64,000 nucleotides of DNA from positions 43,462,001 to 43,526,000 of the forward strand of contig NC_134469.1 in assembly GCF_964194025.1 (NCBI RefSeq), written 5' to 3'. This DNA comes from Convolutriloba macropyga (taxonomy: Eukaryota). The first letter of the stretch is position 1; every line of letters begins with the position of its first letter. Both the position numbers and the translations under genes were made by a program. Shown in pieces: positions 1 to 21,444 of the stretch. The notes under the pieces were generated by a model. The model was not told the origin of the DNA. It worked only from the letters and a program-made list of their open reading frames with translations, and searched no databases.

Positions 1-2620
1 TTGGCAAATCAATAACCCTAGTTAGGTTGCATGTTTTTTTGTTTCCCAGGAGAACTGGAGGAATCATTCGCCACTATAATCTGAACTTTTTAATTCAGCA
101 AATATGTCTTTATATCGTATACCCTTGTGCTAGACCCAAGCTATCTCTACAAAACAGAGAGTCAGAGATCCGATGGGCTTAAATTTGAACATGGAAGACC
201 TATAAGCAGCTCCTTTGGGATGCTACAGAAACTTGCTTAACCCGGCTCATGTGAGAATTGATCAATCGCCAACATGTCAGCACATCAGCAGCTGCCGTGT
301 TAAATTGTGTGGGCTGAAACCTTTTTTTAGCACACGTAAGATGTTTTCCGGTAATACACACATTAAATCTGGAACACGAAAGGGCGCAGAAGAGGTAGTA
401 AAATTTTTTAGAAACTGACATTATACTCACCGAAATCACATTTTTACTGAAAAAAGTTTGAATATACCTTCAATGTTTTAAATTGGGAACCAACGCTGAA
501 TCGGTTGGTTATACATTGTCAGAGCGCTGGTTTACTACAATATATACGCTGCCTATAATCACTCAGTTTCTTATTATACTTTGACCCTGTAATAGCGTTG
601 GAAAAACGGGTCCTTAGAGGTACCCAGAGGCGTTTCCATTGTCTGGAGAGCCAGTACCGCTATTAGTTAATCAACTGAAACCAAAAGTCAACAAATTGTA
701 CTTAGAAGTTGACATGACTATAAAATTGTACGACCAGAATCAAAACAAATCTGAAGTTCTGGGTAAAAATTTAGCTTGTGTCCCTTTTTTGCATAACATG
801 ACTTACTTGTTTTTTGGGAGAACCAAATTAACTCAAAAAAATAAAATACACAATAAACTCGCATAATTAAGCATCAATAGAAATTATAACAAAAGACGAC
901 TTCTTAATTTTTGGAGCCCCAATTGTGAGGATCATAAAATATTTTCGCCTATTTGGAAAAAAACCAAAGATTTGAAAAAATTGTCCAAAGCTTGGAGGAA
1001 ATGAATTCGGATTAACTCATTTTGGCATTTATATTATCCCGAAGTGTTTTGGAATGCCAAAACAGCACTATTGTTTAAAAAGAAGTCCTTGTTTTATCGA
1101 ACAATATTTTGGAGTAGTGCGATGCGGTCTCGAATTTTGGAATGAATTGCGTGACAAAACGAAATAAGGATTTGAATACATGTTTCCACGCTAATATGAG
1201 CTCTTTAAGGGGTGGACTTGGTGTCCCATCTGTGCAAAGGCTTGCTGTTCTCCATTTTTTAGCTCTAGCAGTGGGCATACACTAAATACTAGTTTTTTTG
1301 CTGAGGATTTCGTTGACTTGAAATTCAAATGTGGCATAGAAAAGTAATAAAACACAATCCGATGAAAAAAGTAACACCGAACATCAAAAAAATGGTCGAA
1401 GCAGGTTTACAGAAACCTAATTGTGATCTCATTTCCAAGCTTTGTTTTTTAGAGTCAAACTTTTGAACAGCTGCCAGGACGACTTTGCTTCCCAATGAAT
1501 CATTTTAGTATCCTGCGAAAGCGATATTTATCAAGGGAATGTAAAAACATCAAAAGTCCTGCGCCGGAGAGTGAGGTTCTCTGAACCTAAAAATCGAAAT
1601 GAGGATTCGAATATTTTCTGCCAAGACTTCGTAACCTCTTCAAGAGCTGGACTTCATGTCTCATCCTCGCAAATACTTGCTTTTCCCTTTTTTATATCTA
1701 GCAGTGGGCGCACTCTGGACACTAGTTTAATTCTTTGATGAGGAAGATGTTGACTTGAAATTCAAATGTGGCTGAGACGGGTTATATAAGAAACTAGATT
1801 TTTGACGAACTAGATTTGCTTGATGGCATTTAAGTCATCCGCAAAAAGTACCAGTTTTCTGAAACAACCCATTGTTTTTGGAATTAAATTTTGGAGAACC
1901 GCGGTGCAATTTTGAAATAAAAATTAAGTAGGTTGGCAAATTGAAATGAGTATTTGAATTCGTCCTGTCAAGCCCTATTTCCCTCCTCAAGGGGTGGAAT
2001 TGTTGTCGCCTCCGCGCAAGTACTTGATCTTCCGTTTTTTGGCTGTAGCAATGGGCACTAAATGAGTACTGTTTTGTTTCTCTGGCGATGAAGTTGTTGA
2101 CCCGAAGTTCAAATGTAGCTTAGAAAAGTTTTAGGCAAAACTCATCCCGATGAAGAGACTGACGCTGAACGACAACAAAATGACCATAGCGAGTTTACAA
2201 AAACTCATTCTTGATCTGACCTTCAAACTTTTTCCTTTTGGAGTTAAACGTTTGAACAACTGGCAAATAGTTTTTTTAATCTCCCAATGGTTAATTGTAC
2301 TAACATGCAAAAACCTATATCTAGCAAATGATTAATTAAAAAATTCAATAGGACTGAGTTTGAGAGCGAGAGTTATTGAACTTAAAAAATGCGTATTTGG
2401 CAAATCTTTTGCTTTTGACGGGTTGCATGGTTTTTCGGGTCCCAGGAGCACAATGAAAATCCCTCGTCACGCTAACCTCTACCATATGGTTAAGCAAACA
2501 ATAGACTGAGTTCGTTTTCCCTCTGCACTATAATAGAGTCAATTGAACCGGCAGCCAGTGTCCCGATGGGCTTACACTCGACTATAGAAGATGGGCAAGC
2601 AGCTCTTTCGGGATGTTACA
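1..2620 (-). pseudogene. Cluster of degenerate, mutually similar segments (1-240 ~ 2397-2620; 1170-1620 ~ 1640-1780 ~ 1950-2400), possibly decayed paralogs of a gene with an N-terminal hydrophobic anchor
   Basis: Diverged direct repeats, e.g. CTAGCAGTGGGC...GTTGACTTGAAATTCAAATGTGGC three times and CCGATGGGCTTA...GCAGCTC...GGGATG twice. Minus-strand frames read like interrupted coding sequence (MSFCKLAMVILLSFSVSLFIGMSF). No family recognised. Confidence 0.3.
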
Positions 2621-2785
2621 GTGGTAGACTAGTTTTCTCCTCCTATCCTGAAGAGTGGATCGAGCGTCATTTCCGTGTGACCGAACCAAATTGATGAGAG
2701 TAAAGGGTCTCAATTTCAAAAATTATTTTCAATTTCGCCCTGTTTAACTGCTCAGTTTGGTTGTTTGGTCGAATTAAAGAATGAT

Positions 2786-3140
2786 TAATTGCTCTTGAAC
2801 GAAGTTCAAAGAATTAACTGTAATCGTGTTGATCTTTTTTTGTGCTAAGTTTTTGCTTGACCATTTTGAGTTTCTCTTTTAGAACATTTTTTGAGTTTTT
2901 AGGTGACTTTTTTACGCTTTTGTTCTTCATTTTTGAGTGATCTCTATTGCTTTAAATCCGAAGAAAAGCTTGTTGCCAATATAAAGTCGGTTGCAGCATA
3001 GCAAAATCAGGGGTCGGATAGACGAGTTGTTAGTCCGACTGGTTAGGGATGCGGAGGTAAGCAGTTCGGATCCCCGCGGCGTCAAATTTTTTTCTACCCG
3101 CCTGTTGTTCGAGAGCAATTCTTCCGACATTAGTCGGTTT
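2786..3140 (+). mobile_element. HINE-like (Helentron non-autonomous) element, family A variant
   Basis: 5' subTIR AATTGCTCTTGAACGA (2787-2802), 3' subTIR TTGTTCGAGAGCAATT (3105-3120), terminal hairpin CCGAC-ATTA-GTCGG (3124-3137). Confidence 0.55.
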
Positions 3141-3339
3141 ATGTTTGCAAATTGGAATCAGTGGCAAAATTAATTTCATCCTTGTGAGGTTGTTCAATTT
3201 TGAGATTTACTTTGTGTTCGATTTTCACGTACTTAAATTATGTGGCAATATCTCGTCAAGAATGACCAAATAGAAAGTTTTTCGATGAATGTAGCCTTAA
3301 ACTTTGCTTTTAACCATTCTCACTCAAGATTTTATTCTG

Positions 3340-3471
3340 NNNNNNNNNNNNNNNNNNNNNNNNNNNNNNNNNNNNNNNNNNNNNNNNNNNNNNNNNNNNN
3401 NNNNNNNNNNNNNNNNNNNNNNNNNNNNNNNNNNNNNNNNNNNNNNNNNNNNNNNNNNNNNNNNNNNNNNN
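3340..3471. other. Assembly gap
   Basis: Run of N. Confidence 1.
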
Positions 3472-3713
3472 TTTGAAGTAGTAGAAAAAGTTGATCTTGG
3501 GACAATATGAAATTTACTATTATTCATTTTGGCACTTAAATTGGCATCACCTATATTTTTTTTTCGGTGACCACTATCAACTTTTTTTTCCAGAAAAGCA
3601 GAAAGCAAGGTCATTGGACCCAAAAAAAAATTTAATTTTCACTTTCAAAAATTTTTCCTCGAAGTTGTAAGAGTTGAGTTATATACCATTTTGAAGCAAA
3701 AATTTTGTCGTAC

Positions 3714-3747
3714 TGCCAATATGAAACATCAAAATTTCATTTTGGCA
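3714..3747. promoter_or_regulatory. loxP/FRT-like 13-8-13 inverted-repeat site (candidate recombination site)
   Basis: TGCCAATATGAAA-CATCAAAA-TTTCATTTTGGCA; arms are 12/13 complementary around an asymmetric 8-bp spacer. Function is inferred. Confidence 0.35.
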
Positions 3748-4984
3748 TCACTAAATCTTGGTAGTAAGAAGAACCGAAACAAATTTTTTTCGTCTTAAAA
3801 TCTAATACAAAAGTCAAATTTGTGCCAACCAATAGCTCAAAATTTAAAAAAACTAATTTTTATTTCAAAACCAAAGTGCTGCATACAATGTATGTACACG
3901 AGTGTTGGCCAAAATGAGTCGGATTAAAATGGACTCTAATCGGATTAAAATGTTCGTGCATTTTAAACATGTCCAATTTGTTCAAACTAAATTTGCATGT
4001 GCACTTGTTTGCTGGGACTTGAAACAAAATTAGTGCAAAAGCCAAGAATTAGTTGATACAATCTAAACTATCAGTGCAAAAGCCAAGCGTTTGCATATAA
4101 ACCATATGCAGTCTACCACTGAAAAATCATGATGGATGTCAAATTGTGTAAATATAAATAAATGCTTTAGGATGATGGATGATGAGGTGGACAGAAGGAA
4201 GTCTCACTGGACGTATCACCCTTGATTCATTAGTCTCTCTGTAACTGTCACCCATCGTGTTAACATTGAACTTTTACATATAGGAATGTTGACAATAATT
4301 GTGCATACATGACTTAATAAATTCTTGATTATTAATTTTTTTTCAATCGTGTAACAATTTAACTAACGTAGCAGTTAATTATAAACTGTAAGCGATATGG
4401 TTACTCATAAGCTTCAGATAAAACTCGATTACAGATAAGACTGTATTGTTCGCTCTTTTTGCGCTGTCTTTGTCTGCTTCATTGTCATGATGCCAGTCAC
4501 ACTTAGAGGTTACAATGATATTATATATCATTACGATATTATGAAAGGAATGAAATTATGAAATCAAATACTGAATGGAATGTAGCAACATTATGAAATC
4601 AAATACTGTATGAATTATCGGTGCAATTTCATCACAAATGAGGGACGATTGTAACATAGTTCCCCAAATGAGGGACAATTGAAACATAAATATGTAAACG
4701 TACTGCATTTGGCAGAAAAGAAAATTGAACAACGAGAAAAGAAAATTGAACAACAAATGCATACTGCATTTGGCTACTGAATTACTCACAAAGTTATCAA
4801 CATGGATCACAAATGATTATGAAAATTATGGATTTATCAACTGAATTATGTAAGAAAGTGAGGCACAGTAAGTAAGTGAGGCCTTGGCACAGTGCTGTCA
4901 ATTAAATCTTCAGAGCACTTACTAATTGCACTAATGAGTGTTTTATAGTTTTGACAATGTTCTTACATTTGCTGGCAAACAGGA

Positions 4985-6025
4985 TTACAGATCCTTGTGA
5001 CCCAATTCATGATCCGAAATGTCAACCTCATATTCCTCGTATTCATCAAAATTTGAGTCCGAGTCACTATCCTCCTGAGGGCATTGTTGAATTGAACTTT
5101 TAATCATTTGACGATTGTCGGGTAATTGCGCGGGTTGGAATGATGATGCGCTGCAAGATGGCCCTTGTACCACGATTTCATCATCTATCTCTGTATCGGA
5201 TGCTAGTTCCCCAAAACGGCTTGTTGTTTTGCGGAGACGTTTGCTTCTACGAAATCCAGTTTCTTGTCGAATGATCCTTACTGGGGGTGCTGAGTGATAA
5301 GAACTAACTGAATTATCTGGGCTAGCAATTCTTACTTGTTTATTGGTCGGAAATTCTTTCGAAGATTTTCTTTTGGAACTTCGTCTCTTACTTGTCCTTG
5401 ATACTTTCCGTTCTGGAATTTTAATTCTGATCGCCTTTTTGGTGTTAGATTTCGATGGGTCTCGGCTGGGATCAGTCTCTGACTGTTTTCTAATTGAAAT
5501 TTCCCCCGACATTTTCTTTAATGAAGTTGAGACGTGTTTCTGCATTCGTTCGACCATAGCGTCTATTGCGTTGCCACTCTTGTCCACTGGTTGGATGAAC
5601 TGCTCAAGTGGAGTATTCCTCTGTTCTGGTGTTCCGAATTTTGCTAAGTCTGCTTTATGTATATCAGTGTCGGGTCTACCCGGTACGCGTATCGTAACGG
5701 TTGAGTCTGAAGTCTTTATAATTGATGCTCCCGCTGGTATTGTCTCATAAAGTCCTTCAAGACTTTTTCTCCTGCTCTTAACATTTGAGTTTTTCCGTGC
5801 GAATTTGATTCGGGTACTCGAAGGATTGACTGGCTGTGAACTCGATGACGGAAGAAATTTGAACAAGTTCTGAGCACTAGTTGCCTCTCTGATTCGGTCT
5901 TTATTTCGTTTAATTTCTTCTTCACTTAGTAAGTCTTCGTCCCTCCAATTTGAATCATCTATTAGTTCCTCTGAGCCGAATGTGTCATAATCTAAACAGT
6001 ATTTCGCAACATTATCCCATGACAT
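4985..6025 (-). CDS. 346-aa ORF, probably the C-terminal part of a Ty3/gypsy-type integrase plus a basic/Ser-rich and acidic tail
   Basis: Uninterrupted ORF directly downstream of an integrase HHCC ORF. TVTIRVPGRPDTDIHKADLAKFG resembles the integrase C-terminal beta domain. Confidence 0.5.
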   Translation of the reverse strand: MSWDNVAKYCLDYDTFGSEELIDDSNWRDEDLLSEEEIKRNKDRIREATSAQNLFKFLPSSSSQPVNPSSTRIKFARKNSNVKSRRKSLEGLYETIPAGASIIKTSDSTVTIRVPGRPDTDIHKADLAKFGTPEQRNTPLEQFIQPVDKSGNAIDAMVERMQKHVSTSLKKMSGEISIRKQSETDPSRDPSKSNTKKAIRIKIPERKVSRTSKRRSSKRKSSKEFPTNKQVRIASPDNSVSSYHSAPPVRIIRQETGFRRSKRLRKTTSRFGELASDTEIDDEIVVQGPSCSASSFQPAQLPDNRQMIKSSIQQCPQEDSDSDSNFDEYEEYEVDISDHELGHKDL

Positions 6026-6114
6026 GTTTGTGTCTTAACATTATCCCTGTTTTAAAATTATAATATGTATATTTCTTTTGACCATCGTAAATAGGTCTGG
6101 TAGAATTGGTACTA

Positions 6115-6684
6115 TTAGCTTAGTACAATTGGCTTTAAGTTCTTACCAAACTCTGTGCACGCTTTACACAGTCGAACCCTATTGAGTAAATCTCTGTTGC
6201 AAAATGGCCACCACACTCGCGTTGCCAGTTCCGTCATGCCCCAACTTCCAGGGTGTGTAGCATGGAATACATCTGAAACTGCCTCTTTAATGCTGTTAGG
6301 AATTGCGACTCTATTGTCGACAAATATGCAACCGTTCCTTGTGCTCAATGATCTCCAATGAGCATGCACTTGTTTACTAAGTTTGCGACATCTTTCTTCG
6401 TCGTTTGAAATAATGCAATCTCTGATTTCTCTTAGTATAGAATCTCTGTTGGTAAGGGCAGCTAAGAATTTTGAGTTAAACAATTGTCGTACATTTGAGT
6501 CTAGGTCGGAAAATGTGGGCATCATGATAGGAGTACTGGCTTGCGTTTGGTGACAAGTAGGAGGCTTTGAAGGAGACAAGTAATTTCTAAGATTGAAATT
6601 ATTTACAATAGGGATTTCATTCGTGTAACTTGGTTCGGACGAATTATCAGACATATTTGGAGAATATGTCTGAGAATTTGGCAA
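6115..6684 (-). CDS. Ty3/gypsy pol fragment with integrase HHCC zinc-binding domain; DDE core missing
   Basis: LSTRNGCIFVDNRVAIPNSIKEAVSDVFHATHPGSWGMTELATRVWWP...CKACTEFGKNLKP matches the integrase H2C2 motif. Only relics (PIYDGQK/EIYIL) remain in 6026-6114. Confidence 0.8.
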   Translation of the reverse strand: MPNSQTYSPNMSDNSSEPSYTNEIPIVNNFNLRNYLSPSKPPTCHQTQASTPIMMPTFSDLDSNVRQLFNSKFLAALTNRDSILREIRDCIISNDEERCRKLSKQVHAHWRSLSTRNGCIFVDNRVAIPNSIKEAVSDVFHATHPGSWGMTELATRVWWPFCNRDLLNRVRLCKACTEFGKNLKPIVLS

Positions 6685-6867
6685 AGCGAGTTATTAGCGC
6701 GTGATTCACTTTCTACGCTTTGGTAATTACATTCTTTGCATTCTTTGCATTCTATCGTCCTACGCTTGCGTAAGTAATAGAGTTGTTTGAGTCATGTGGT
6801 TTCTGAACGATCTGAACGTGCGGCGTTTGTTTACTTGTTTTGTAAATGTTCTGCGTTTGCTTCAAAT

Positions 6868-7400
6868 TGTTCCGCGTTGTTGCACACGTGCTTTGATTGA
6901 AGCTACCCCTGACTGGGAAGTGTATTAGCTATGAAAATTAGCTATACCAAATTATACTAAATGTTCCGCGTTGTTGCAAACGTGCTTTGATTGAAGCTAC
7001 CCCTGACTGGGAAGTGTATTAGCTATGAAAATTAGCTATACCAAATTATACTAAATGTTCCGCGTTGTTGCAAACGTGCTTTGATTGAAGCTACCTCTGA
7101 CTGGGAAGTGTATAACCTATGAAATTTAGCTATACCAAATTATAATTAATTTGAACGATTGAACAAATGCAAAACAAATTTAGAAATTCAATATCACCCA
7201 ACAACAAGCTACCCTTGACTGGGAAGTGTATTAGCTATAAAAATTAGCTATACCAAAATATACTAAAGGTGAACAATTGAACAAATGCAAAACAAATTTA
7301 GAAATTCAATATCACCCAACAAGAAGCTACCCTTGACTGGGAAGTGTATTAGCTATAAAAAATATCTATACCAAAAAATACTAAAGGTGAACAATTGAAC
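6868..7400. repeat. Tandem array: five copies of a ~62-bp core at spacings 94, 94, 118 and 118 bp
   Basis: Core AAGCTACCCYTGACTGGGAAGTGTATTAGCTATRAAAATTAGCTATACCAAAWTATACTAAA at ~6900, 6994, 7088, 7206 and 7324. Confidence 0.95.
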
Positions 7401-8365
7401 TTCATCGCGTTTCATGGTTGCATACTTTGTGTTTCACAAATGCAAAACAGATTTAGAAATTCAATAAGATCACCCGCTCGTCTGCAGCGAGGAAACCCCA
7501 GCACGGAAAGTGCTGTATTCGTTATGGAGACGGGCTGTCATGGTGGTGGGTATAGGTACACATACGGATTGTTAACGGTCAACAACTTGAGACAGCGTAG
7601 TTAGTTTTCCAGCAGTGAACGAGTGACCTTAGTTGTTAGTATATATCAAACACCTAGTTTCCATGGTACAAAAATTAAGTATTCTTGCTCATTGTTTTCA
7701 CGCTAAAATGTCGGATACCTATCATCATTCTTCAGTCCTGAAAAGCTCAGCTAATAAAAATAATTATATCAATTCCTAGCTTTAAACGGTTTAAAATCAA
7801 ATTACAATGTATTACTTTGCAGTTGTTGAAAAAAGGGCTCAGTTACATTTGACTTACATTATAAGCAAGTTTTAATTGCCGTCTGTGTTTTAATTTCAAA
7901 ACTTCGCTGTATTGTAAATGCAATCGTGCGACCTCTATTGGAAAATATTTTCATTTGTTTTACAATCGTCAAACGATTGTTATTGATACATAATTAAATC
8001 AATTCAAAGGTCGATTGTGACATTCAATCATCACCAAAGAAATGGTCAATCATCAATGAAACTTATCATTTATGTAATAATAGCCAGTAGGTGATGCCCA
8101 AAAACTTGATCGATAAAAGAAAATTGATTGACCCCCGTTTGGCCCCTATCACGTCAAAATGAATATATTTTCATTTGGGTTTCTACTCATCTAAGTAGAT
8201 TAGTTTAATATTTAATATTTAATATTATGACTCCAAATCTACAATGCTCTGAATCATCATCTAAAGTTCGGTTTGAGGGGACCGTCACCTTGAACTGGGC
8301 AATTTTTGAAAGGGGGATTTTTACAATCCCCCACCCAAGAACAATTGCATATTATATATCATTTA

Positions 8366-8430
8366 CAATCGTGTAACGATTGATGAACAATCGTGTAACG
8401 ATTGATACATGCAATCGTGTAACGATTGAT
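8366..8430. promoter_or_regulatory. Three tandem dyad sites CAATCGT-GTA-ACGATTG upstream of the SET-YR gene
   Basis: Perfect 7-3-7 palindromes at 8366, 8388 and 8412; another with a CAA spacer at 7963. Confidence 0.5.
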
Positions 8431-8750
8431 GAACAACTTCAAAAGAGACATTTCTAATGATCATTTCTAATGGTAAAAGATAATGGTAATTATAACCGAT
8501 AATTAGTCATATTTTTATTGACGCTAATCGATTAAAAGTTAATAACTACTACTTGCACAATAAACAAATAGATGAACAAAGTTAATAACTAGTACTTGCC
8601 TCATAAACAATTAGATAAACAAATTATCGCAGACTCTTTTTCTTTTTGGACTCAAATTTCAGGCCACTAAAACTATTTCAAAATTATGCCATTTTAAAGT
8701 AAACTCTTACAACAATAAGATTCAAATCTTTGTCATATTCAAATCCAAAA

Positions 8751-10165
8751 ATGGTTAAATTGCGAAGTCAGACAGCACGTACGCGAACCCTCAGAAACAG
8801 AGTTATTGCTGATGACAATCACAATAACAACAACAATAATAATAGGAAGGGTAAGTTGAGCAAGAAACGAAGTCGCGAGCAGCAGTCCGACGAAACAAGT
8901 GCTGGAAAACGATTTCAGCCCGACAGCCCGACGATAGACGATAGACAACCCGTACAAGATGTACACGAGGAACCCGAAGATGTTGGCACAGATATTGTAA
9001 ACGCAAACTGGCAAATTCTTGGTTTTATAGATGCTGAGCTCACTGAAAAGTTAATTGACTGCCAAACGTTGGAAACACACAAGCTCTGTTTTCATTCAGA
9101 CTTTCAATCTCTTTTATTGAGAGATCCGAAAGCAAAAGCTCTGTACACGCAGATGTTCAAATCATATCTCGACTCCCTTGAAAATGTTAGTTTCCTCACT
9201 ACTTCAAAATATGAACCACAAGATGGCTTTACACAGATGCGCGTTGTCGCCAAGAAGAAATTCAGGCCGAAAACAGTCATCTCAGGTCTGGAGGGTTTTA
9301 CAGAAACTGTCTCTGATGACGAGCTCACGGAGGACATGTCTTTTTCGGTTTTTGCCCCCACAAACAATTTTAAGAGCACACGGATTATGCTCGGACCTGC
9401 TTCATTCGTCAATCACGAATGCAACCCAAACGCCCGATATGTTGTGTCCGGTGAAAAGAACAAAACGATCATATCAATTCAGGCAATTAGAACAGTCGAA
9501 ATTGACGAAGAAATTTCAGTTTTTTATAGCCCTGATTATTTTGGAGATAATAATAGGAATTGCCAGTGCACCACATGCATGAAAGAAGCACCGAGTGATG
9601 AAGCAATCGTTCAAGTCTCACCCAGTGAAGCAATCGTCGAGGAAGCACCGAGTGATGAAGCAATCGTTCAAGTGTCACCCAGTGAAGCAATCGTCGAGGA
9701 AGCACCAAGTGATGAAGCAATCGTTCAAGTGTTACCCAGTGAAGCAATCGTTGAAATCGTACCCATCCGTGAAGCAATCGTTGAAATGTTACCAAATGTT
9801 GAACAAGCAGACGTCGAGGAAGCACCGAATGATGAAGCAATCGTTGAAATGTTACCAAACGTCGAGGAGAAGGCTCGACTCCAACGACCAAAGAAAAATA
9901 AAACTGATCCCGTTCTGGAGTGCCTAATTTGTCATGCCGTTGTCAAGAGAATGGACAAGCACTTGCAGCAACACAATGACATTCTCGAAAAAGCAGAGAT
10001 AACCTTTATCATCGATTTCTACAGGACAAAAAATGTACAGAAGAAGCACAAAATCTACGACTGTATGGCTTGCTACAGACGATTTGCTTCTCTGGTGACG
10101 CACAAGTACACCAACAAGTGCGATTGTTCTGCAGTCACGAGAGTGGAGAATCCGGAAAGCAGGGC
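8751..10165 (+). CDS. Exon 1 of SET-ZnF-tyrosine recombinase fusion: SUV4-20/Set9-type SET and post-SET domain, acidic repeats, two Zn fingers
   Basis: ATG at 8751. Motifs IDAELTEKLIDCQTLETHKL, FSV, LGPASFVNHECNPN and EEISVFYSPDYFGDNNRNCQCTTC match KMT5B/C motifs (THKM, LGPAAFINHDCRPN, EEISCYYG..FFG..NEFCECYTC). Zn fingers CLICHAVVKRMDKHLQQH and CMACYRRFASLVTHKYTNKC. Donor GC|GTAAGT. Confidence 0.88.
9585..9870 (+). repeat. Coding minisatellite (57-nt unit, EAPSDEAIVQVSPSEAIVE) forming an acidic linker
   Basis: GAAGCAATCGT recurs every 27-30 nt; frame is preserved. Confidence 0.95.
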
Positions 10166-10534
10166 GTAAGTGATAAAGTTATTTTACTCGGAGACCATTT
10201 TTGTTGAGTCAAACGTAAGACAATTGCATAAACAATCCAATGTTAAATCAAACGTCTGACAATTGCAAAACAATTAAATGTTGAATCAAACGTTTAACAA
10301 TTGCATAAACAATATAATGTTGAGTCAAACGTTTAACAATTGCATAATAAACACTCCAATGCATAACCAATTTATTGTTTACTAAAACGTCTGACAATTG
10401 CACAATAAACAATCCAATGTTGAGTCAAACGTCTGACAATTGCATAAACACTCCAATGTTGAGTCGAACGTCTGACAATGTTGGGCAATAAATTACAATG
10501 TATTTCGGTTGAGTTATATTTTTGTTTGTTTTAG
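10166..10534 (+). other. Phase-2 spliceosomal intron (369 nt) made largely of ~39-bp tandem repeats
   Basis: GTAAGT donor and TTTTTGTTTGTTTTAG acceptor. Splicing gives GC|T (Ala) and joins the two ORFs in frame. Unit AATGTTGAGTCAAACGTCTGACAATTGCATAAACAATCC occurs about 7 times. Confidence 0.85.
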
Positions 10535-12146
10535 TTCACTTCCAGACAATCTAAGAGCCAAATTGAAGTCCTCAGTAATTGCGAGGACCAGCGATTTAGA
10601 AATTGCCCGCAGGTTCACTGAGCACCAAAAACAGTTGGCAAAATGTGCGGGCAATGAATATTGCAACGAGGACAGATCAGGCTTAATTCAGTTGATGGCT
10701 GTATTGTATGGGGAAACACAAGGTCTGAGGCGACCACAGCAACTATTACAAGCTTGCCTCCAGTTGCAAGAGCGAAGAGGATTGAAGCCTCAAACGATGC
10801 TAAACTATCTCGCAACTTTCAGCAACTTCGTTGATTACTGTTTTTTGTATTCAGACGGTGTCTCCAACAGGATGGAACGAGAGCACTCAACGATGTTGGC
10901 GGCAATTAAAAGTGTAAGGAAAGCGTTCTCCACTGCAGCTATTAAGAACTATCGTACCACAGCCAAACAATTGCGAGCCCGGGTCCCGTCGATTGCTCTG
11001 GTACGAAATCGTCACAAGCTGGCCTTGAGTCATCTAAAGGACAACTTAGCAACATCTACCTTAACGTACAAGCAACAACAGGCCCTAAATTTCTTTGTGC
11101 TACAAGGTAGACTTAATGTACGGTCTGGACCCTTACTGGCACTCACTTGGGAGGACGTCAAGTACATTGAAGAAAACAGCGTTCTGGAAACTGATAGGCA
11201 CAAGACGGGAAAGTTTTATACGCTGTATTTGAAAATAAAGGCCGATCAAATACCGCTGCTTTACAAGTTAAAGGAGACATTTGCCGACGAGAATGATTCA
11301 ATGGAGTCGAAGTATGTCTTCAGCTCGAAGCAGAACAAAATTGAGCGGTCCATTTCAAAACACATTCAGGAAACTTTCTTTACTCTATTCGGCGATGACC
11401 CAAACGAAGTGCGATTTAACGCCAACTCCATCAGAAAGTATTGGGAACGCCGATGGAAAAGTTTCATTGGCAAGGTTCCAGAAGGGGTGACAAAAGCGCA
11501 TTTGGCACAAACGGCTCACAACAAGACAACAGCTGAGGATATCTACATTGGTAGAGAGGGAACCTCAGAGGACCGCGACCAGCTGTTGTCGATATATTGT
11601 GACGATTTGTCGTCAGATATCCCACCGGAAGAAGCCGAAGAAGCAGAAGTAGACGACAAAGAGTCTGATGTAGAGTCTGACTTTGAAGCGCCCGAAGAGC
11701 CACATCCCATTGATCCACAGACGCCAATGGAGAAGCCTATATGTTCGGAACCAATCGTACGGCGATTCAATGCAATTAGGCCGTCAGTTAACCTAACCCC
11801 AATTAACCCGGTTACTCCAACAGAACAACCTGCTGCAAACGTGACTCGGGAACAAACGGTTACTGCAGACGCTCGACGGAGGTCAACTATAGGTCAGAGT
11901 AGTGAAGACGTTCTCCGAGAGAAGTTTATAAAGTCTTTGAAATCATTCCGCGTCAAATCGGGAGCCCCCGCGTGGACTGACCCCGAAAAGAAAGCATGCT
12001 TGCTGTTTTCCGGAGTCAGTTCCACAGTTTCAGTTCCCGACATCAAGGCACGATGTGAGGAAGCTGGAATTAGATTATCGAACGATGCGCATTTGCGGAT
12101 ATACACAAAACTAAAGTCTGCTGTTCAAGTATTCAAACATAGATAA
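10535..12146 (+). CDS. Exon 2 of SET-ZnF-tyrosine recombinase fusion: core-binding and catalytic YR domains, acidic stretch, C-terminal Myb/SANT-like helix region
   Basis: LKPQTMLNYLATFSNFVDY (core-binding helix); NVRSGPLLALTWEDV (Arg, 11121); HKT (Lys, 11202); YVF; NSIRK (HxxR position, Arg 11433); AHNKTTAEDIY (His 11517, Tyr 11544); WTDPEKKA...IYTKLKS tail. Confidence 0.85.
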
Positions 12147-12171
12147 ATTTTTTATTGTTTTAGCCATTATA

Positions 12172-12290
12172 TTTGTTTAACCTTGTTTAACCTAGTTTAA
12201 TTGTTTAACCTTGTAACTTAACATGTTTAACCTTGTAATCATAACTTAATGTTTAACCTTGTAATTGTTTAACGTTATTTAATTGTTCAA
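12172..12290. repeat. Short TGTTTAACCT repeats in the 3' region of the SET-YR gene
   Basis: About 7 degenerate copies. Confidence 0.85.
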
Positions 12291-12697
12291 TCATAACTTA
12301 CCTAAAGTACCTGTCTTTTCTACCAAGAGTACTATGTTTAATCAGTCGTCCGACGATTTTAGTAGTGAAAAATAGACCAAACGTCCGACGCAATGTTTGT
12401 TTGTCTGTAAAATTTGAGAAAAAAGTCTGTAAAATTTGAGAAAAAGTTAATTTTTTTAAAAAATAGTCTGTAACTACTGTAAAAAATTTGGTAGTAAAAA
12501 ACGTATTCTCAATACCAATTTGAAAAATATTGTAAAAATTTAGTAGTAAAAAACTTAATCTCAATATCATATTAAAAAAATTGATCTGAAATGCCAATTT
12601 GAAACCCTTACAACCACCCTTACTACTTTTTTAAATTGGCATTTCAACAAAAATGTTGTTTCAAATTGGTATGAGCTTTACACTTTTCGCTTCAAAT

Positions 12698-12989
12698 NNN
12701 NNNNNNNNNNNNNNNNNNNNNNNNNNNNNNNNNNNNNNNNNNNNNNNNNNNNNNNNNNNNNNNNNNNNNNNNNNNNNNNNNNNNNNNNNNNNNNNNNNNN
12801 NNNNNNNNNNNNNNNNNNNNNNNNNNNNNNNNNNNNNNNNNNNNNNNNNNNNNNNNNNNNNNNNNNNNNNNNNNNNNNNNNNNNNNNNNNNNNNNNNNNN
12901 NNNNNNNNNNNNNNNNNNNNNNNNNNNNNNNNNNNNNNNNNNNNNNNNNNNNNNNNNNNNNNNNNNNNNNNNNNNNNNNNNNNNNNNNN
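12698..12989. other. Assembly gap
   Basis: Run of N. Confidence 1.
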
Positions 12990-14830
12990 TAGTAGTACAT
13001 AGGCTTTAGGACCAGAGTAGGGGTGAAAATTCACCCTTCGGTTTTCAGCTGGCACAATTTTCTCGGCAGGTTTACAGGAGCCACAGAGACAGAGAATTCG
13101 CCAGGTACAGGGTTCAATCTTAGCTCCTATCGAAGCATTCGTGATACATCTTTGTCAGTCTTGATTTTTAAAACTCATTCTCAGGTATGTGCTTGTTTAA
13201 GATGTTCATAGGTCGCACAGTCCTTGTCCAAAAAATGTATCGGTCTTCTTCAAACTGTTAAAAAGAAATTTGAAATTTTTGTTTTGCCGCTTTTCTTTTT
13301 GGCTTTTCGTTTTGGCTTGGCACATTGCCTTGAAGAATAGAACATTGTGTGATTTGAGACACAACGATACAGACAGTACATTGAGTTATAGTTTTCGCTG
13401 TTCGTAGTCAGCTTCTTTTCCGCATATCCATGCAGTGACTTTGCCTTCACTCTTTCAAGCCATTTCAGGTCAGTTTTTGATGCGTTCCAGACCTGGGAAG
13501 CGTAGGTTTGAACACGCACTACGTAACCAACGTACGCATTCAGTTTTGTGACGGGATTGGCTTTGTGTAAACAGTTTCTTTTCAGGAACCAGAAGGATCG
13601 CCAGGCCTTGGCTGTTCTTTGAGAGAATTTATCACTCCAGGAGAAATTTCTAGATATGATTTCCCCAAGGTCCATTTGCTGCAGCACCACTTCGAGTGAA
13701 TAGCCGGATTTGCATGATGCGCTTCCTTGCGGACAAAGTTTTTTGCTTTTCTAGACGTTTATGGACATATGGTTGTCTTCACACCAGGCTCGAATCTTTT
13801 CAACAACCCAATTTGCGTTAGTTTTGCTCTTCATCATCACTTTGAAGTCGTCAGCATAGCCATACGATGAATAAATATCAACGGCTCTGAGAAGGTCGTT
13901 AGCGCAGGCAAGGAAGAGGAGAGGCCCTTGGATAGACCCTTGGGGAACACCACTGGTCACATCCCTAAAACTTGACCTGGCATTGTTTACCTTGTCACAT
14001 TGTTTACGTTCTCTGAGGTAGCTGCTTAAAAGATTGAGCAGTTTTCGACCAATGCTGAAGTTTGGTAGCTTTTCGAGTAGCTTTTCAGAGGCAACTAGGT
14101 CAAAAGCTTTTTTTAAGTCCACGTAGAGGGCATATAATTGTTCACTCTTTGCCGAGTTGCAGAGTTCATTCACTTCTTTTAGGTAGAGAAGGAACTGCAG
14201 AACTGCCGAACCTTTGTGGCGGAAACCAAATTGTATTTTATCAAGCTGTGCTTCAATGATTGGATACAAGTGCTGGAAAACGAATTTTTCAGAAATTTTG
14301 GACACGTTTGTGAGCAGGCTAATCGGCCTGTACAGACTTATATCGGCTTTGTTATTCTCATTATAGATGGGTGTCACTTCGCTGAATATCCATTGGGATG
14401 GGAAGGATCCTTTGTTGATGCAGGTTTGAAAGACAAGGAGAAGCGATTTTGAGAGCTTCGAGAGGTTTTTCAGGACGGTGTTACTAATGTTATCTGATCC
14501 ACAAGCTTTGTTTGCATCCAGTTTTGAAAGCGCAACCTTGATTTCATCCTCCGAGAGTTTGGTGAAAATATTTTCTGTTTTCTCGTAAACTTGGTCAGTA
14601 GACAATTGACCTTCCACGTTGAAAACATTTGAAAAGAAATTATTGAATAGTTCACTTTTTTCCAGATCGTCAGATGTGCGGGCGATTTTGATTTGGTTAT
14701 GATCATCAATGATTGCGATATACATATCTTTGCTTTTGTGTAGTGACTTGAGATATTTTTGTAGATCTGACATTCGCCTGCTGCGAAATATTTTTTCTTC
14801 AAAACTGTTTTGGTCGTTCTCAATCTCATT
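12990..14830 (-). mobile_element. 5'-truncated, decayed CR1/L2-group LINE (RT ORFs 13751-14773 and 13250-13690) with (TAC)n tail running into the gap
   Basis: YRPISLL, QFGFR, DLKKAFD, GVPQGS and YADD motifs; frameshifts and stops; 3' UTR hairpin GGGTGAA-AA-TTCACCC at ~13021. Confidence 0.92.
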
Positions 14831-16899
14831 CTTCAGTGCTGTTTCTTTCCGTTTAATTTTTAACAGAAGATGATTTCTGTCTGAACTTTATGACGCTCAA
14901 CCAACTGCTTCCACCAATACAAGGAGTTTAATTTTTTAATAACACATCATTTAGTTCTGTGCAAGAGCGTTTTACACGCAGATTTTATCCAAAAACCTGA
15001 AATCTAAATACAATATGAGTGTTTGAAATCCCGCCAACTTGCGCATTCTCTAAAAAACGAGTTTTCATCTGCAAATAAAAAACTGTATTGTTTTGTTCTA
15101 ATAAAGAATAATTCTTTAACTGCTCTTTTATTACTGGCTAACACCATGCTTCGTGCTCACTGAATTTTTTCATGTAAACTTCTTTCCTTTTCAGGGACTT
15201 TTTGTTAGGGTGTTCAATTCAAACACTTAGGAATAGTATACTTATTGGATTTTAACTTAAACTTATTGCATAGATGATCTTTATGAAAGGCAATGAACCA
15301 CTTAGTTGGAGCTAGCTGTTAGAAATCAGAGCAAATAAAGTGAAAGATTGATCTTTTAAACCGAGTTAAGCAGGAAAAAACAATAAGATTGAATAGAGTC
15401 ATTTTACTGTTAATTTTTTCTCTAACGTTTTGACTAAGAAATACCTCTAAACAAAAACAAAATTTACAATTAGTCTACTGGAAAACTGTTACACACTATG
15501 GTAAGGGATTTGAAAATAATATTTGCAATTAATTGGCGAGACAAAAAGCGGAACAATCAATTAATTTCATTTGCATAATAAAAAATCAAATATTCGAATA
15601 ATTGCAGTTTTTGATCAATTAAGTTTGACTATCTATCAAAATATTTTTTCATAGATTTTAACACGATTATGCCTGGATTTACCCTAATAGTTGCACAAAA
15701 GATTACATTATGCGATGTCTTTGCTTTTTCTACTTGAAAAATTTTTAAGGCGAAAAGGATCTCAACAGCAAAAGTTGTCAAACTACATGTAATCTGTGAC
15801 TGAAAATAGTAATCGAGAACTCTTCCTTTATTTCCAGGTTTCGAATTTGGGAGAATATTGTTCCAATCATTGATCAGTTAATTGTGTGGTTCCAATCACT
15901 TATGGTAATTAAATTAGAGTCAACAATCAATTATTGCAACCAATTTTTTGCCAATTGATTATGGCCAAGAGAACAAATGCACTTAATCGTGATCTGCAGA
16001 TGTAAAACTTTTAATAAAATCAAATGATGAAAATAATCGGAACAGAAAAACAGGTGGTATTTACCTTCCAACTACACCACTGCTACCATTTCATTGGTTT
16101 TCCAACAGTTTGTTTCTGTTTTATTTTTTGTCAGCGTGTCTTTATGCAGATGTTTACTTTGAAAACGAAAGAATTCATTTTGTTTTTTTTTGTGATAAAC
16201 TTATTGTTGTGATAAACTTATTAAATAGAAATATTTGATAAGTTTATCACGTGTAATTTAAGAGTATTTTGAATTTCTATCTCTGAATGGTCTTGATTGT
16301 GGGCGCCAGCTGTTTACGAAACGCCATCAACGCTGCTCCTCTCTACCGGCTGCAGACGTTCCTGCGACGATTCTGTTTTGCAGTTCCTGGACTGAGCCTC
16401 AAAACCCTGGTCACGTAAGCCTCTTATCAGACTGCAATATCTTCTGCAAAAAGGTACGTTACTCAAAAATTTCATCATTGTTATCTGGCACGATAAAACT
16501 AACAATACCCTTACGAAACATCCTTCAAACAATGATCGGGCTTGTCGCATTGACAATTTGTTGAATCTCATCGAACAATTCAAACCTCGACTAGCTGCTA
16601 TTGTTTACACCGCGAGATCCTCGGCTCCTAACATACTGGAGCAATTTAGGACTTCTCAATTAGTGACCATCGACATCAGGAAACGTTTGCTTTCCACTCA
16701 AAACGGAGAGATGTTCCTACTGTTGAAGACATTCTTCGTGCCCATCCACCAGCTTACTTGGAATTGAAATTTTTTTCAGTCGTCCTAAATAACTCGAAAG
16801 ACCTTCGTTGTTTAGCCCAGAGGAAGCGTGGTTATCGAAAACGCCCAACTTCCGAGAAAAGAAAGAAATCACAAGTAGAAAGTCAACTAATAAAGACTT

Positions 16900-19800
16900 C
16901 AGGTTAATTCATTGTTTTGTTCTTTGTTGGGGTTTCTGCTTCCTTGAGACTTAAGAGTTTCGAGGGCAAGGAGATCTCGACTTCGGGACTTGACTTTGAA
17001 ATGTCTCTGAGGTCCAACTCCATTAGGGACCCATGCGGTCATTGCGCACTGCAGGTCAAAGATGATGGACATGGAGCTCTACAATGCCATAGGTGTGACT
17101 TCTGGATCCACCTAAAATGTACTTCTGTTCCAGGGGCCCTGTTAACTCACTTGAAAAAAGTTCAAGGATTGGTTTGGCTTTGTGAGTCTTGTGAATCTCC
17201 AGCTAAAGAAGCACTCTTCGTGTCATCTCCCAAAGTTGACGAAGTCCGGAAACTTCGTGAAAAAGTTGACGAGCTGAAAAAGAATTTCGTATCCGTTAAT
17301 GAGGTCAAACGTGATATGACGGAGATAAAGTCCTTGGTCAATTCGTCTTCATCGGAGGTCAATAACATCAAAATTGAACTGTCGAAACCCAAGCCTCGCC
17401 CAACTGAACCGACTGCGGTGACAGCAAAACTTCTCGCAAACTCGATTTTGGGCCGCTCAATACTGGTATTACTCAATACCAGTAGTAGTACTTTCCAAAG
17501 TCAATGGGACAAACGGATGGCCCTGTCAAAGTCTTATATGCTGAAGAACACCGAGTTCTTTCTGAAACCAATGCTAACTCCGGAAAACGAGCCCTGGAGA
17601 AACAACTGCTCAATTTGTGTTTCAAGCGATCAATTCTAGGCATCCCAAACACAAGATGAAAACTTTGAACTTGAAACTTTGTCATGGGAACGCTGTTTTG
17701 GACCACTCCAAAGCCCCATATGTTCTAGCAAAGCAAATTAAAGATAATTGACTAGCTGATGACTTTTACGTTTCTTTTCTTCTTCTGAGCTGTCGAGGAA
17801 TGCTCTCGCTAGAAAAACGAGCTGTCCTCGCAGTCCTCCTGCATAAACACCAACCACAATTGGCTTTTCTCACCGAGACACGGCTAGATACCACGCTTGA
17901 AAACAGTGAATTGTCAGCTGGGGGATCGTTTTCAGTTTCTGGAAGACAACACCACATGCAGGGTTGACATGGCGGGACTCTGATTTTGCAGAACACTTCC
18001 AACATATTATGTGCAGAGTTCTTTGGCAATCCTGTAATAAGCAACGTCGACTTTTGTACTTCAGCCTTGATCAAATTTGACGATCGTCTTGTCTTCTTTA
18101 GTTTGGTCTACCTGCCCCCACAATTAGTCAATATGAGGTCACCGGTACTTCCTATACACCCTATCCGATGTTTTCCGGTACATCGAAACTCGGTTCTTGG
18201 ATTGACGTTGCAAATGCTTTCAATGATTTATTTGCTTCGAACTTCAACACTAAATTGTACCTAACAAGGACATCAGATGACAGCCAAAGTCTTATTTTCT
18301 TCATTGATTTCTGTGGTTCATTTAGCAACTCCGATATTCTTCAACTAATTTTAACCAGCACCGCTTGCACTTATGAGACCCATGATGACTTCCCGAATGG
18401 ACTATTGAAGAAATGCTCTGCTCTTTTTGCAACATTTTTCCGGATCGTCTTCAATTGCGTAATCCTGAACTGCCAATTCCCCGAATAATGGAAGTCTTCA
18501 TTTATTAAACCTATTCACAAAGGAGCTTGCCGGAACGACATCACCAATTACCGTCCAATTACCGTCAATTAGTCTGCTGCTGAAGATCTCCTTGATATTC
18601 GAAAAGTTACTCGACAAGTTTCTTATTGATCTACTCAAGAATAAAATTTATCCGAGACAATATGGTTTCCAGTCTATGAAATCTACGATTTGTCAGCTTC
18701 TAGAATACGTCAACTACCTCTATCTCAACAAGGGAGACATACCATTCTCAATATTCTTCGATTACGAGAAAGCCTACGATCGTGTGCCGCATTCCGTTCT
18801 CCTAGTGAAACTCCGAAAAATTGGTCTGCACTCGAATTTTGTTTCCTTCTTTGAAAGTTAACTTGTTACCTTGTCAGAAGATTTTAAGCAGTACGAATCA
18901 ACGGGTTTTCATTGATGCACACAAGAGTATTGGGTGGCGCACCCCAGAGTTCAGTATTTGGGCCCCTGCTATTCTTGATTTTTACCAACAACCTGTCGTG
19001 TATTCTTCTGGACAGTATTATGTGCTTATTTGCTGATGACGCGAAACTAGTTTTCAACTCATTGAATTTCAATGATGATTTTGTACGTTTCTGCAATTGA
19101 TATCGAGCAAACGGGATTTTAGTCAACAGGAAAAAGAGCCAATGTATTTCTTTTGGGACTGTCGAGCTCATGTTAGAGTACGCCAATATCACAATTCCAC
19201 AACAAGAGTGCGCGAAGGATCTCGGAGTTTATGTCAACAGAATGTTAAAATGGAGCACGCATGTAAAGTCACCAACAGCCGAAGAGCTTTCTACAAGTTT
19301 AAAAATACTATACCTTGGAGCACTTTATCACATATCAAGTAAAAGCTCTACGTCGCCTATGTTGTTCCAATACTCCTCTATGGTTCCAATACTCCTCTTT
19401 ATCCACAAAAAGTGCTTGAAGTGGGTTTATGGGAGTTCTAGGAACTACTTGGACACTGTTCTCACGCATAAAATCCTACCGATGGCCTTTCGAATCCAAG
19501 TTGATGACTGCCGACTGTTCATTCTCTTGAACCAGGGGAAGCTACTGAGGGACTGTGATAATGTTGAAGTGTTATCTCTCGGTGTGACGAGAAGACGGAG
19601 AAACAAGTTCAAAGTCTCAAGCGTAAAGTAGCCCCCGGATTTTTCTACTAACGGTCCTTCAACATGATCAACTTTTTCTATCGTCATGGGATAATCGATG
19701 ATGATTACTTCAAGATCAACAAGATTGTTGAACATCTTGAATCCATCATCCCATGTTTCAATCCCTGTTTTCGATGCTCATGGTTTGTTTGTTGTAATTG

Positions 19801-19910
19801 CCCTACTTGTACGAGCTTTGTAAATGTTAAATAGTAGAAATGAATTTCATTGGTTTTTAGATATTGGCCCTTAATCGGGAATTAGTCTTTCCCTCTCTCT
19901 CTCTCAAAAA
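16900..19910 (+). mobile_element. Near full-length decayed CR1-group LINE: ORF1 with PHD finger (ATG 17001) and ORF2 endonuclease-RT in pieces
   Basis: CGHC...QCHRCDFWIHLKC...WLCESC PHD finger; LTETRL and HGGTLI endonuclease relics; QYGF, DYEKAYD, GAPQSS, FADD; terminal CSWFVCCNCPTC. Confidence 0.9.
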
Positions 19911-21444
19911 AACGCAAGATCAGTCAAACTTGTTTGAAACGCTCAAGATTTATCATTATGAACACTTTTCCAATTATGATAACCAATTTGTTATGATAAA
20001 ATTTTTAATTAGATATGATACTTTGTGATGTTCCGGCACAGTTGGGATAAAAATTTATCACTTAACCATTTTTCTTCTGTCTGAGAGTCAACTAAGGCAA
20101 ATCGCTTTGATCCTGGGACCGTTTGATTTTTGCCTTCAAGGCAATAGCAGGTTCAGTCGTTTTTTGTGAGTTCTACCCTTTACTTCCTGTTTTCTTAAGT
20201 TTTTTCTTTTCTACCTTTTAAATTTGCCGCTGTTTTCTGACAACACAATGCACAGGTCACTTCAGCTCAGGCACTTTCATTTTTTTCCTTTCCAATACCA
20301 AACTTCAAAACTATGGCTCTAAAACTAGAGAAAGTTTCGCAACGCAGAGAACTCCTAGAAACCTTTACAACTCTTCAAAAAGATAATGTGATTATTGTAA
20401 CATTTTATTTTGTGAATGGTTTGAGTATACAGAATGCAAGTATATTAAGGTGTTTGGCAAGTCGAGTCCTAACACTCAGATAACACCCAAATTTGACAAA
20501 ATTGTTAAATGTTTCAAAGCGCGTTTCCTCATGCGTTTTCCTACAAATGCAAGGTTCCAAATTGTCTCGGAAAAAATTGACAAGATCAAATTGAAAGACC
20601 ATTGTATCTTATATGTCTTTCCTAAGCTAACCTATGTGGGCTGAAAGGAAAACGAATAACCTGAGTTCAGTGCTAAATCAGGGGATTAGAGCTAACAATA
20701 CCCCAATGCTGACTGGAGACAATTTCATTTCGATAAGAAAATCAATGAAATTGAAAAGAAAACTTACTATATTAGTTTCACCTAAGCTTCATGTGGCAAG
20801 TTTAATGACAATTTTACCCCAAACAATGCACGCAATTGTGAGAAGCTATTAAAAACAACGCTCAAATTGGTACAATCTAAACGGTCCTTCATTTTTTTCA
20901 GAGCCTTTTATCTCAAGCAATCACAATTTTCAAAGCATAATGACTTTAATTGCCAATAGCTCTGGAGCCGAACCAAACGTTCGTGCCCCTCTGGTGCTCA
21001 AAGATTTCGTCTGTAAATAAAACGGATTTGCATGTTTAAAGTTTTTGAGACGCTTAAGGAAACTAGTAAAACTGATTGCAGTTAACAAGGTATCTGAACA
21101 GTGAAAACCTTTCATTTCGGATCAACTGATTCCGCTACCTAAAATTGACGGCGGGTTTCGCCAGTATCTGTTGGAAATGCATTACGCTGATTGTTTAAAT
21201 ATGGGGGTATATTGTCGTTCTTACTTTTTTGAAATGTTGTGTAAAAGTTTTTGAAGCACGTGAGATGTATTTCGATGATAAACTATTTGGATTTGGAATT
21301 TGAGAGGGCTAAGAGAATGCCACACATTTTTAAGAAGCTTCCATTACCCCCTCCAAAACTACAGTTCAACTTAAGATATATTTGTAGATGCCTTCAACAC
21401 ATTAAATAGGGAACCAATGTTGAATTCTGTACGCAACTTCAGAG

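Follow-up and report, generated by a model that had tools for sequence, protein, structure and literature searches.

A 64,000-nucleotide stretch of the Convolutriloba macropyga genome (NCBI RefSeq assembly GCF_964194025.1, contig NC_134469.1, positions 43,462,001 to 43,526,000 of the forward strand, referred to here as the window and numbered from its first letter) contains a copy of a multi-copy, Crypton-like DNA element with two genes. One gene fuses a KMT5-like SET domain, a zinc finger and a tyrosine recombinase (YR) fold, and the other is represented by an open reading frame (ORF) with an Integrase_H2C2 domain (the H2C2 ORF) and a second ORF which we call ORFb. Throughout this element we find a short dyad motif, CAAWCGT-N3-ACRATTG, which a preliminary description of this DNA had noted as recurring across the element. 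We agree that it is element-specific, as it is present in all copies and essentially absent from their flanks, it occurs in a cassette of the window copy which cannot be aligned with the other copies, and it is replaced in a sister family by a co-varying version. We infer from these patterns that the dyad is bound by a protein and that this protein would be encoded by the element itself, and on balance we think it probable that a DNA-binding protein made by the element recognises the dyad, as a dimer, as its cognate site.

The exact pattern occurs at nine distinct sites in the window and in none of 100 dinucleotide-preserving shuffles. Four of these are perfect 7-3-7 palindromes (7963, 8366, 8388 and 8412), all four of which had been recognised previously, and five are of the intron type CAAACGT-N3-ACAATTG (10210, 10249, 10287, 10326 and 10426). 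A tolerance of up to two mismatches raises the number of distinct sites to 22, of which 20 fall within 4344–12359, compared with 2.3 matches expected on both strands, and the remaining two (57435 and 63801, both weak) are the only ones in the window beyond the element, which bears out the earlier impression that the motif is scarce elsewhere. Similarly, 22 of the 24 occurrences of the half-site CAATCGT in the window fall within 4300–12400. The list of variants in the preliminary description is correct except in details: those at 4344 and 10384 have one mismatch each, 12343 has two, 10465 has three, and 12378 is a left half-site plus ACG only, with four mismatches in the right arm. Sites at 4635, 4665, 5101, 6481, 6752, 6977, 7071 and 11752, and the half-sites of a coding repeat, were absent from that list. 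A fixed distance between half-sites with a free spacer had also been claimed correctly, as the spacer is 3 nt everywhere in the window while its letters vary (GTA, CAA, AAG, CTG, TTA and CCG), and the sister family has the same geometry. The dyads and related sites of the window copy are as follows.

4344 to 4360, forward strand: dyad CAATCGT-GTA-ACAATTT, one mismatch, near the left edge of the cassette (motif scan).
4635 to 4681: two dyad-like sites (4635 and 4665, two mismatches each) in a 30-bp duplication downstream of ORFb (motif scan).
5101 to 5117, reverse strand: dyad-like site, two mismatches, within the ORFb coding sequence (motif scan).
6481 to 6497, reverse strand: dyad CAAATGT-ACG-ACAATTG, one mismatch, within the H2C2 coding sequence (motif scan).
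6752 to 6768: dyad-like site, two mismatches, immediately upstream of the H2C2 ORF (motif scan).
6843 to 6859, reverse strand: degenerate dyad, three mismatches; homology to the other copies restarts at its first base.
6977 to 7087, forward strand: two dyad-like sites (6977 and 7071, two mismatches each) in a 94-bp tandem repeat (motif scan).
7963 to 7979: perfect palindrome CAATCGT-CAA-ACGATTG, located about 790 bp before the ATG of the SET gene (exact match).
8366 to 8428: three perfect CAATCGT-GTA-ACGATTG dyads in a single 22-bp tandem array of three units, about 320–385 bp upstream of the ATG (exact match).
9585 to 9856, forward strand: in-frame 57-bp coding tandem repeat with eight CAATCGT half-sites (GCAATCGT).
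10202 to 10479, forward strand: single 39-bp tandem array of about seven units, with seven intron dyads of the CAAACGT-N3-ACAATTG type (10210, 10249, 10287, 10326, 10384, 10426 and 10465).
11752 to 11768: dyad-like site in coding sequence, two mismatches, possibly a chance match (motif scan).
12343 to 12394, forward strand: 3' pair, CAGTCGT-CCG-ACGATTT (two mismatches) and, 35 bp on, the half-site CAAACGT-CCG-ACG.

We note that the two genes are separated in the window by adjoining tandem arrays of 94 bp x 2.9 and 118 bp x 2.7 (6868–7400), which are conserved in the other copies and have one weak dyad-like site per 94-bp unit.

Because the 22-bp and 39-bp arrays hold many of the dyads, these are not independent of one another and represent roughly a dozen independent places. 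Many transposons have internal satellite-like arrays, and the dyads might have no function of their own and simply be the leftovers of internal tandem amplification, homogenised by duplication and gene conversion. We regard this as unlikely, though less so than the other alternatives considered below. It fits the location of most dyads inside tandem arrays, but these arrays differ in unit length (22, 30, 39 and 57 bp) and apart from the dyad share only a short A-rich tail, and single, non-tandem dyads also exist (4344, 5101, 6481, 6752, 7963 and 12343).

The same distribution is seen in the other copies of the family. We identified eight further copies (L001, L002, L007, L008, two in L009, and L010). 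They are spread over six contigs, and their flanks are unrelated to one another, being mostly LINE (long interspersed nuclear element) or Penelope-like retroelements. When the window and seven other loci were pooled, there were 190 sites in 77.4 kb of element and three in 113.7 kb of flank, and the densities of 2.45 and 0.026 per kb differ 93-fold; six loci of other families gave four matches in 122 kb. All eight further copies keep dyads at homologous positions, and all matches in L007–L010 lie inside elements. The L010 counterpart of the window dyad at 12343 is CAGTCGT-CCG-ACGATTG. The common type of copy has an array with a spacing of about 30–38 bp upstream of the H2C2 gene, two dyads between the H2C2 ORF and ORFb in a presumed intron ending TGTTTAG, three downstream of ORFb, four upstream of the SET gene, seven in the SET–YR intron and one or two after the stop codon, and both genes are therefore bracketed and split by dyads. 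In L008, three direct 14-bp repeats upstream of the H2C2 gene (3237–3280) have one half-site each (CTCAATCGTGAT).

The comparison that we find most telling is with a sister family in the same assembly, represented by one locus (L003) whose YR is 54% identical. L003 has no window-type dyads but has 37 AWTCGC-N3-GCGAWT sites compared with 0.03 expected, and this version is at chance level in the window. The L003 spacers are mostly GGA or TCC and again 3 nt long, and the arms of the two families differ mainly at the innermost base (T in the window, C in L003). L003 sites are found in an upstream tandem array in the TCC orientation (6096–7482), as five full dyads (9046–9282) in an in-frame repeat of the coding sequence that separates SET domain and zinc finger, in the intron (9894 and 9945), in 3' arrays (11758–12242), directly after the H2C2 ORF (13079 and 13110) and in an array after ORFb (14659–15178). 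The two families share the layout of upstream array, coding repeat between SET and zinc finger, intron array and 3' arrays, as well as dyads between the H2C2 ORF and ORFb, a gap that in both reads as an intron of that gene. A coding sequence and the family's DNA motif are superimposed in both cases, as half-sites in the window (9585–9856) and as full dyads in L003 (9002–9350). All of the L003 arrays have changed while their geometry and places, including those in reading frame, have been kept, and we suggest that this reflects a recognising partner that changed with them, as it is hard to explain otherwise. In particular, it would not be expected of amplification leftovers that an altered motif should appear in every array with spacing and placement retained, even within a reading frame.

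The sister family also bears on the possibility that the dyads are sites for a host transcription factor, recruited by the element as promoter or enhancer modules. Both genes have dyads upstream and in their introns, as is typical of enhancers, but two families in one assembly use mutually exclusive versions of the dyad, the motif is about 90x rarer outside the elements, and 3' regions and a coding repeat are also filled with it, and we give a host factor little chance. We consider it very improbable that the dyads act as hairpins or cruciforms, in the DNA or in a transcript. The four perfect 7-bp palindromes with 3-nt loops could form such structures, but all seven intron sites and most of the cassette sites pair at only five of seven positions, with two adjacent central mismatches that are not compensated (in the intron, CAAACGT against the reverse complement of ACAATTG), and the arms of L003 (AATCGC with GCAAAT or GCGAAT) behave likewise. 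Such non-compensatory changes in half-sites fit recognition by a protein and not a hairpin.

Further evidence comes from the segment carrying the second gene, which in the window copy has the following structure.

4240 to 6842, reverse strand: H2C2–ORFb cassette, inverted and diverged relative to all other copies (comparison with L001 3403–6588).
6115 to 6684, reverse strand: ORF with Integrase_H2C2 (HHCC zinc-binding; PF17921, E 1.4e-5), with a probable donor GTAAGA at about 6146.
4985 to 6025, reverse strand: ORFb, basic and serine-rich, with no Pfam family.

A single gene probably comprises the H2C2 ORF and ORFb as its two exons, and this second gene had been overlooked in the preliminary description. 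The cassette proteins of the window and of the other copies are in opposite orientation and share 50% and 34% amino acid identity for the two ORFs, and the window cassette is not alignable at the DNA level, whereas the neighbouring segments on both sides are 90–99% identical. The window copy is presumably a mosaic which arose by exchange with a diverged relative. Despite this divergence, the window cassette has six dyad-type sites (0.07 expected; Poisson 1.4e-10). A separate set of sites is present in the cassette of the other copies. The probable intron of the window cassette contains inverted CAATTGT-type half-sites with a different spacing. That a non-homologous cassette retains the motif is a further point against the dyads being leftovers of tandem amplification.

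The edges of the cassette raise the possibility that the dyads are recombination sites of the YR, used for internal rearrangements (inverting or swapping the cassette, for example) or to excise and integrate the element. The cassette is the sole orientation-variable segment and in the common copies is bracketed by inverted dyads (L001 3415, forward strand, and 6589, reverse strand); in the window, the right homology break is the first base of a dyad, at a position (6843–6859) where the other copies carry CAAACGT-CGA-ACAATTA on the reverse strand. L003 also has another gene order: its cassette (12572–14449) is downstream of the SET–YR gene and not upstream as in the window family (L001 4543–6085), and is again found between dyad arrays. 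The YR fold and catalytic residues look intact as well. However, YR core sites such as loxP, FRT, dif and the lambda COC' have a 6–8-bp crossover region and 9–13-bp arms, each bound by a clamp-shaped monomer, whereas all sites in both of our families have a 3-nt spacer which places the half-site centres 10 bp apart. Furthermore, when the breaks were compared at the nucleotide level with dyad spacers, the right one was compatible with such a location but the left break is 12 bp outside a dyad, the cassette is about 50% diverged (the inversion is for this reason not a recent flip), and the inverted cassette is seen in the window copy only, with all other copies sharing one orientation. Finally, a motif scan found no dyad with up to two mismatches in L009 11846–13134, the stretch which contains the junction between two tandem copies. 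As the half-site spacing misfits YR clamps and the L009 junction is without a dyad, we rank a YR core site low and think it rather improbable, though the dyad-bracketed cassette hints at exchange or inversion of this module at dyads.

The element itself is larger than had been described earlier, when its limits were placed at 4344–12394. Homology with the other copies reaches from one run of N to the other (3340–3471 and 12698–12989), and the SET–YR gene occupies the right-hand part.

3472 to 12697, forward strand: visible part of the element copy (BLAST against L001, L002 and L007–L010, 85–99% identity).
8751 to 10165, forward strand: exon 1, with a KMT5B/C (SUV420H)-like SET domain, an EAIV-type coding repeat and two short-spacer zinc-finger motifs.
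10166 to 10534, forward strand: intron of 369 nt, GTAAGT...TTTAG, phase 2, filled by the 39-bp array.
10535 to 12146, forward strand: exon 2, with a YR fold (core-binding and catalytic), a disordered linker and a conserved four-helix C-terminal domain.

Two parts of the window (3472–4239 and 6843–12697) align with the other copies. Reverse transcriptase ORFs fall outside 3472–12697 and only two genes lie inside the unit, and the SET–YR intron is retained in all copies; because there is no reverse transcriptase in the unit and the intron is kept, we regard this as a DNA element of the Crypton kind. Cryptons end in short direct repeats (4–6 bp) and do not have terminal inverted repeats; here there is no long inverted repeat between the visible ends, both of which enter masked N runs. 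L009 contains two head-to-tail tandem copies (2454–12201 and 12359–21647) with a unit of about 9.9 kb, the arrangement expected if a circular form integrated repeatedly into itself. In L001, about 1.2 kb of exon 2 is duplicated in tandem within the copy (11701–12800, in which window 11053–12253 occurs twice). Close relatives of the exon 2 protein were found only in two ENA assemblies, and clustering at 90% gives a protein cluster of 71 members. When 1.84 billion protein cluster representatives were searched with a profile, only 266 relatives appeared at E ≤ 0.001. The relatives come from ENA, Logan or JGI assemblies; for the 26 clusters with listed sources none is from NCBI or UniRef, and the sole name given is 'hypothetical protein'. 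A scan of JGI metagenomes with a distant SET–YR protein (P0076) gave no matches.

Exons 1 and 2 were searched separately for known domains. Exon 1 includes a SET domain (Pfam E 2.8e-8), and its PDB matches to KMT5B/C have E-values of 1e-14 to 1.6e-16, with KMT5B the best, compared with about 1e-3 for other SET families. The KMT5B match spans exon 1 residues 147–279, which is the SET core alone, and by sequence this core is most similar to the H4K20 methyltransferases KMT5B/C, with H4K20 as the putative substrate. The zinc-finger motifs produced a weak ROS_MUCR-like match. Exon 2 gave no Pfam hit at E ≤ 0.1 and no PDB sequence match, DUF3504 was found neither in exon 2 nor in ten long relatives, and GCR1_C was also not found (Pfam); it should be noted that a missing DUF3504 or Crypton match means no detectable match and is not evidence of being unrelated. 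An AlphaFold2 model of exon 2 (21 homologues; mean predicted local distance difference test score, pLDDT, of 75.6) had as its best Foldseek PDB matches only tyrosine recombinases (YopR, XerA, Cre, lambda Int and Tn1549 Int), with probabilities of about 1 yet weak E-values of 7e-3 to 0.1. Across the alignment of 21 sequences, K223, R300, H328 and Y337 never vary and R196 hardly does (assigned by motif spacing to the YR pattern R...K...H-x-x-R...H/W...Y), and H328 and Y337 are nine residues apart as in Cre, lambda Int and XerD. The histidine of the H-x-x-R box is an asparagine, N297, in 21/21 family members (window ~11424–11426); with the other positions kept, the putative catalytic set looks largely intact. 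The C-terminal 90 residues form a conserved four-helix domain (model pLDDT of 81) which the preliminary description had called a Myb domain. This label is not supported, as a Myb fold has three helices, there was no Pfam hit at E ≤ 1 and no Myb/SANT match, and the best structural matches are Fur-family winged-helix proteins (weak, E ≥ 0.46).

If the dyad is the site of an element-encoded protein, the binder is predicted to be a dimer which contacts two half-sites of 6–7 bp (AATCGT or near variants) whose centres are one helical turn apart, and this 10-bp distance would suit a small dimeric protein sitting on one face of the helix. With arrays on both sides of each gene and in its intron, and half-sites running through the coding repeat, the whole element would carry a family-specific address. 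More loosely, the arrays might control the activity of both genes, or concentrate the recombination machinery or the SET enzyme on the DNA of the element, or do both, as TnpA does on the repeats of En/Spm (see below). Candidate binders are the H2C2–ORFb protein, the short zinc finger ahead of the YR and the C-terminal helical domain. The zinc finger, Myb and YR domains had been named as binders originally, and of these the zinc finger remains a candidate even though it is also present in dyad-less families, while a Myb domain is unsupported and the geometry of the 7-3-7 dyad makes the YR unlikely. The H2C2 protein is a new candidate, as its cassette co-occurs with the dyads: it is present in both dyad families and in 0/5 dyad-less families (10 kb either side), though this is a small sample in which L011 and L012 look decayed. 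The zinc finger and C-terminal domain are both present in the dyad-less L004, L011 and L012.

Several observations weigh against recognition by an element-encoded binder. Firstly, most dyads come from tandem duplication, which inflates the counts. Secondly, the arms are no more conserved than other non-coding sequence within the family (18/182 variable columns compared with 232/2050, p = 0.62), though the test has low power because the copies are young (89–99% identical). A cell-wise count of arm conservation had seemed significant, but this was due to indels and shared ancestry and the column-wise test was negative. Thirdly, the sister-family comparison relies on the single L003 locus. Fourthly, several variant arms (ACAATTG and CAATTGT) look as they would after CpG decay of ACGATTG, and some sites may be decaying rather than tuned. 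Finally, five distant families (L004, L005, L006, L011 and L012) do not have the same or an analogous CG dyad, and the dyads are not general to the superfamily as judged from these sequences. The lack of excess arm conservation would also be expected of amplification leftovers, as would the non-dyad arrays of the distant families. These are 15–19-bp GGAATAACGTCTAAA-type units in direct and inverted blocks in L006 (4175–4294 and 8716–8958), and 27-bp units in inverted blocks in L004 (11649–11911) and L005 (12741–13015), and motif arrays beside the gene may thus be a general feature, unlike the dyad.

Several other families have long (AGT)n/(TAG)n microsatellites some 2 kb from the SET gene, on its upstream side except in L004, where they lie downstream, and these tracts may be an element end or a target feature.

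L003 722 to 978 and 5169 to 5517: (AGT)n/(TAG)n.
L011 6028 to 6200: (AGT)n/(TAG)n.
L012 5684 to 5891: (AGT)n/(TAG)n.
L004 14692 to 14814: (AGT)n/(TAG)n.

A more far-reaching version of recognition by an element-encoded protein, which we hold to be doubtful, is that the SET–zinc finger–YR fusion or its H2C2 partner docks on the dyads and lays H4K20 methylation on the element's own DNA only, so setting its expression, replication licensing or recombination competence; the addresses of sister families would then differ by one base pair per half-site, and the dyads may bracket an exchangeable or invertible cassette. The tethering of the SET domain, proposed in the preliminary description as an autoregulatory loop, would be compatible with dyads spread over the whole unit, and if it is true that the dyads direct the SET domain, this would be a transposon writing its own chromatin state.

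The surroundings of the element in the window are rich in retroelements, with three reverse transcriptase ORFs, one of them beside a GIY-YIG ORF (Penelope-like), and a PHD-finger ORF.

13751 to 14773 (reverse strand), 21860 to 22525 (reverse strand), 23032 to 24543 (forward strand), 62581 to 63540 (reverse strand) and 16917 to 17636 (forward strand): retroelement and PHD-finger surroundings.

Among known mobile elements, the closest in overall organisation are the Cryptons, which were reportedly described by Goodwin in 2003. Like these, our element is DNA-based with a YR as the only recombination enzyme, without a reverse transcriptase or, in the visible part, terminal inverted repeats (TIRs); a spliceosomal intron is retained and the head-to-tail copies in L009 fit integration from a circle. 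As in CryptonF, where GCR1_C follows the YR, an extra putative DNA-binding C-terminal domain is found after the YR. In contrast with Cryptons, the element joins a KMT5-like SET domain and a zinc finger to its YR, carries an additional Integrase_H2C2 gene and, in a unit of about 9.9 kb, has family-specific dyad arrays; neither DUF3504 nor GCR1_C is matched in Pfam. The carrier is unusual in this fusion of an H4K20-methyltransferase-like SET domain to a recombinase: it resembles KMT5B and KMT5C in the SET core, but here the SET domain is joined to a zinc finger and a recombinase in a mobile element. The Crypton survey of Kojima and Jurka (2011, PMC3212892) mentions no SET domain, and a full-text literature search found no paper on a SET–YR element. 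The carrier element thus appears undescribed in the searchable literature.

For the dyads themselves, the closest functional analogue is found amongst DDE transposons. En/Spm (CACTA) elements have subterminal repeats bound by TnpA, a protein of the element, Ac has subterminal AAACGG repeats and P elements have THAP sites. The repeats of Spm overlap with its promoter, and TnpA regulates transcription and epigenetic state as well as assisting transposition. Like the TnpA sites, the dyads are many short, element-specific motifs in direct and inverted pairs. In contrast, En/Spm, Ac and P have DDE transposases, TIRs and subterminal motifs, whereas here there is a YR and the sites are also found in introns, between the genes and in a coding repeat. 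Amongst YR systems, the arm-type sites of lambda Int and Tn916 and the FLP/FRT system of the yeast 2-micron plasmid with its STB repeat array show that non-core repeats can be bound by a separate domain or partner, with the accessory sites of lambda and Tn916 organising the recombination complex and STB serving plasmid partitioning. However, such arm-type sites stay within about 250 bp of the core and do not have the 7-3-7 dyad form, whereas the arrays here extend over about 8 kb.

The Crypton-derived proteins Ndc10/Cbf2 and Gcr1 use the YR scaffold and a C-terminal domain as a sequence-specific, non-recombining DNA binder (PMC3212892). These are domesticated host genes with degenerate catalytic residues, in contrast with the largely intact-looking catalytic set of our element. 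For DDE transposons it is well established that proteins of the element recognise motifs repeated in its DNA, but we found nothing comparable for eukaryotic YR elements in PMC3212892 or in the full-text literature searched. Here, a defined 17-bp site, a T-to-C switch of the innermost base between sister families and four candidate modules make recognition directly testable by binding assays. We conclude that the dyads probably belong to the known class of element-specific binding repeats.

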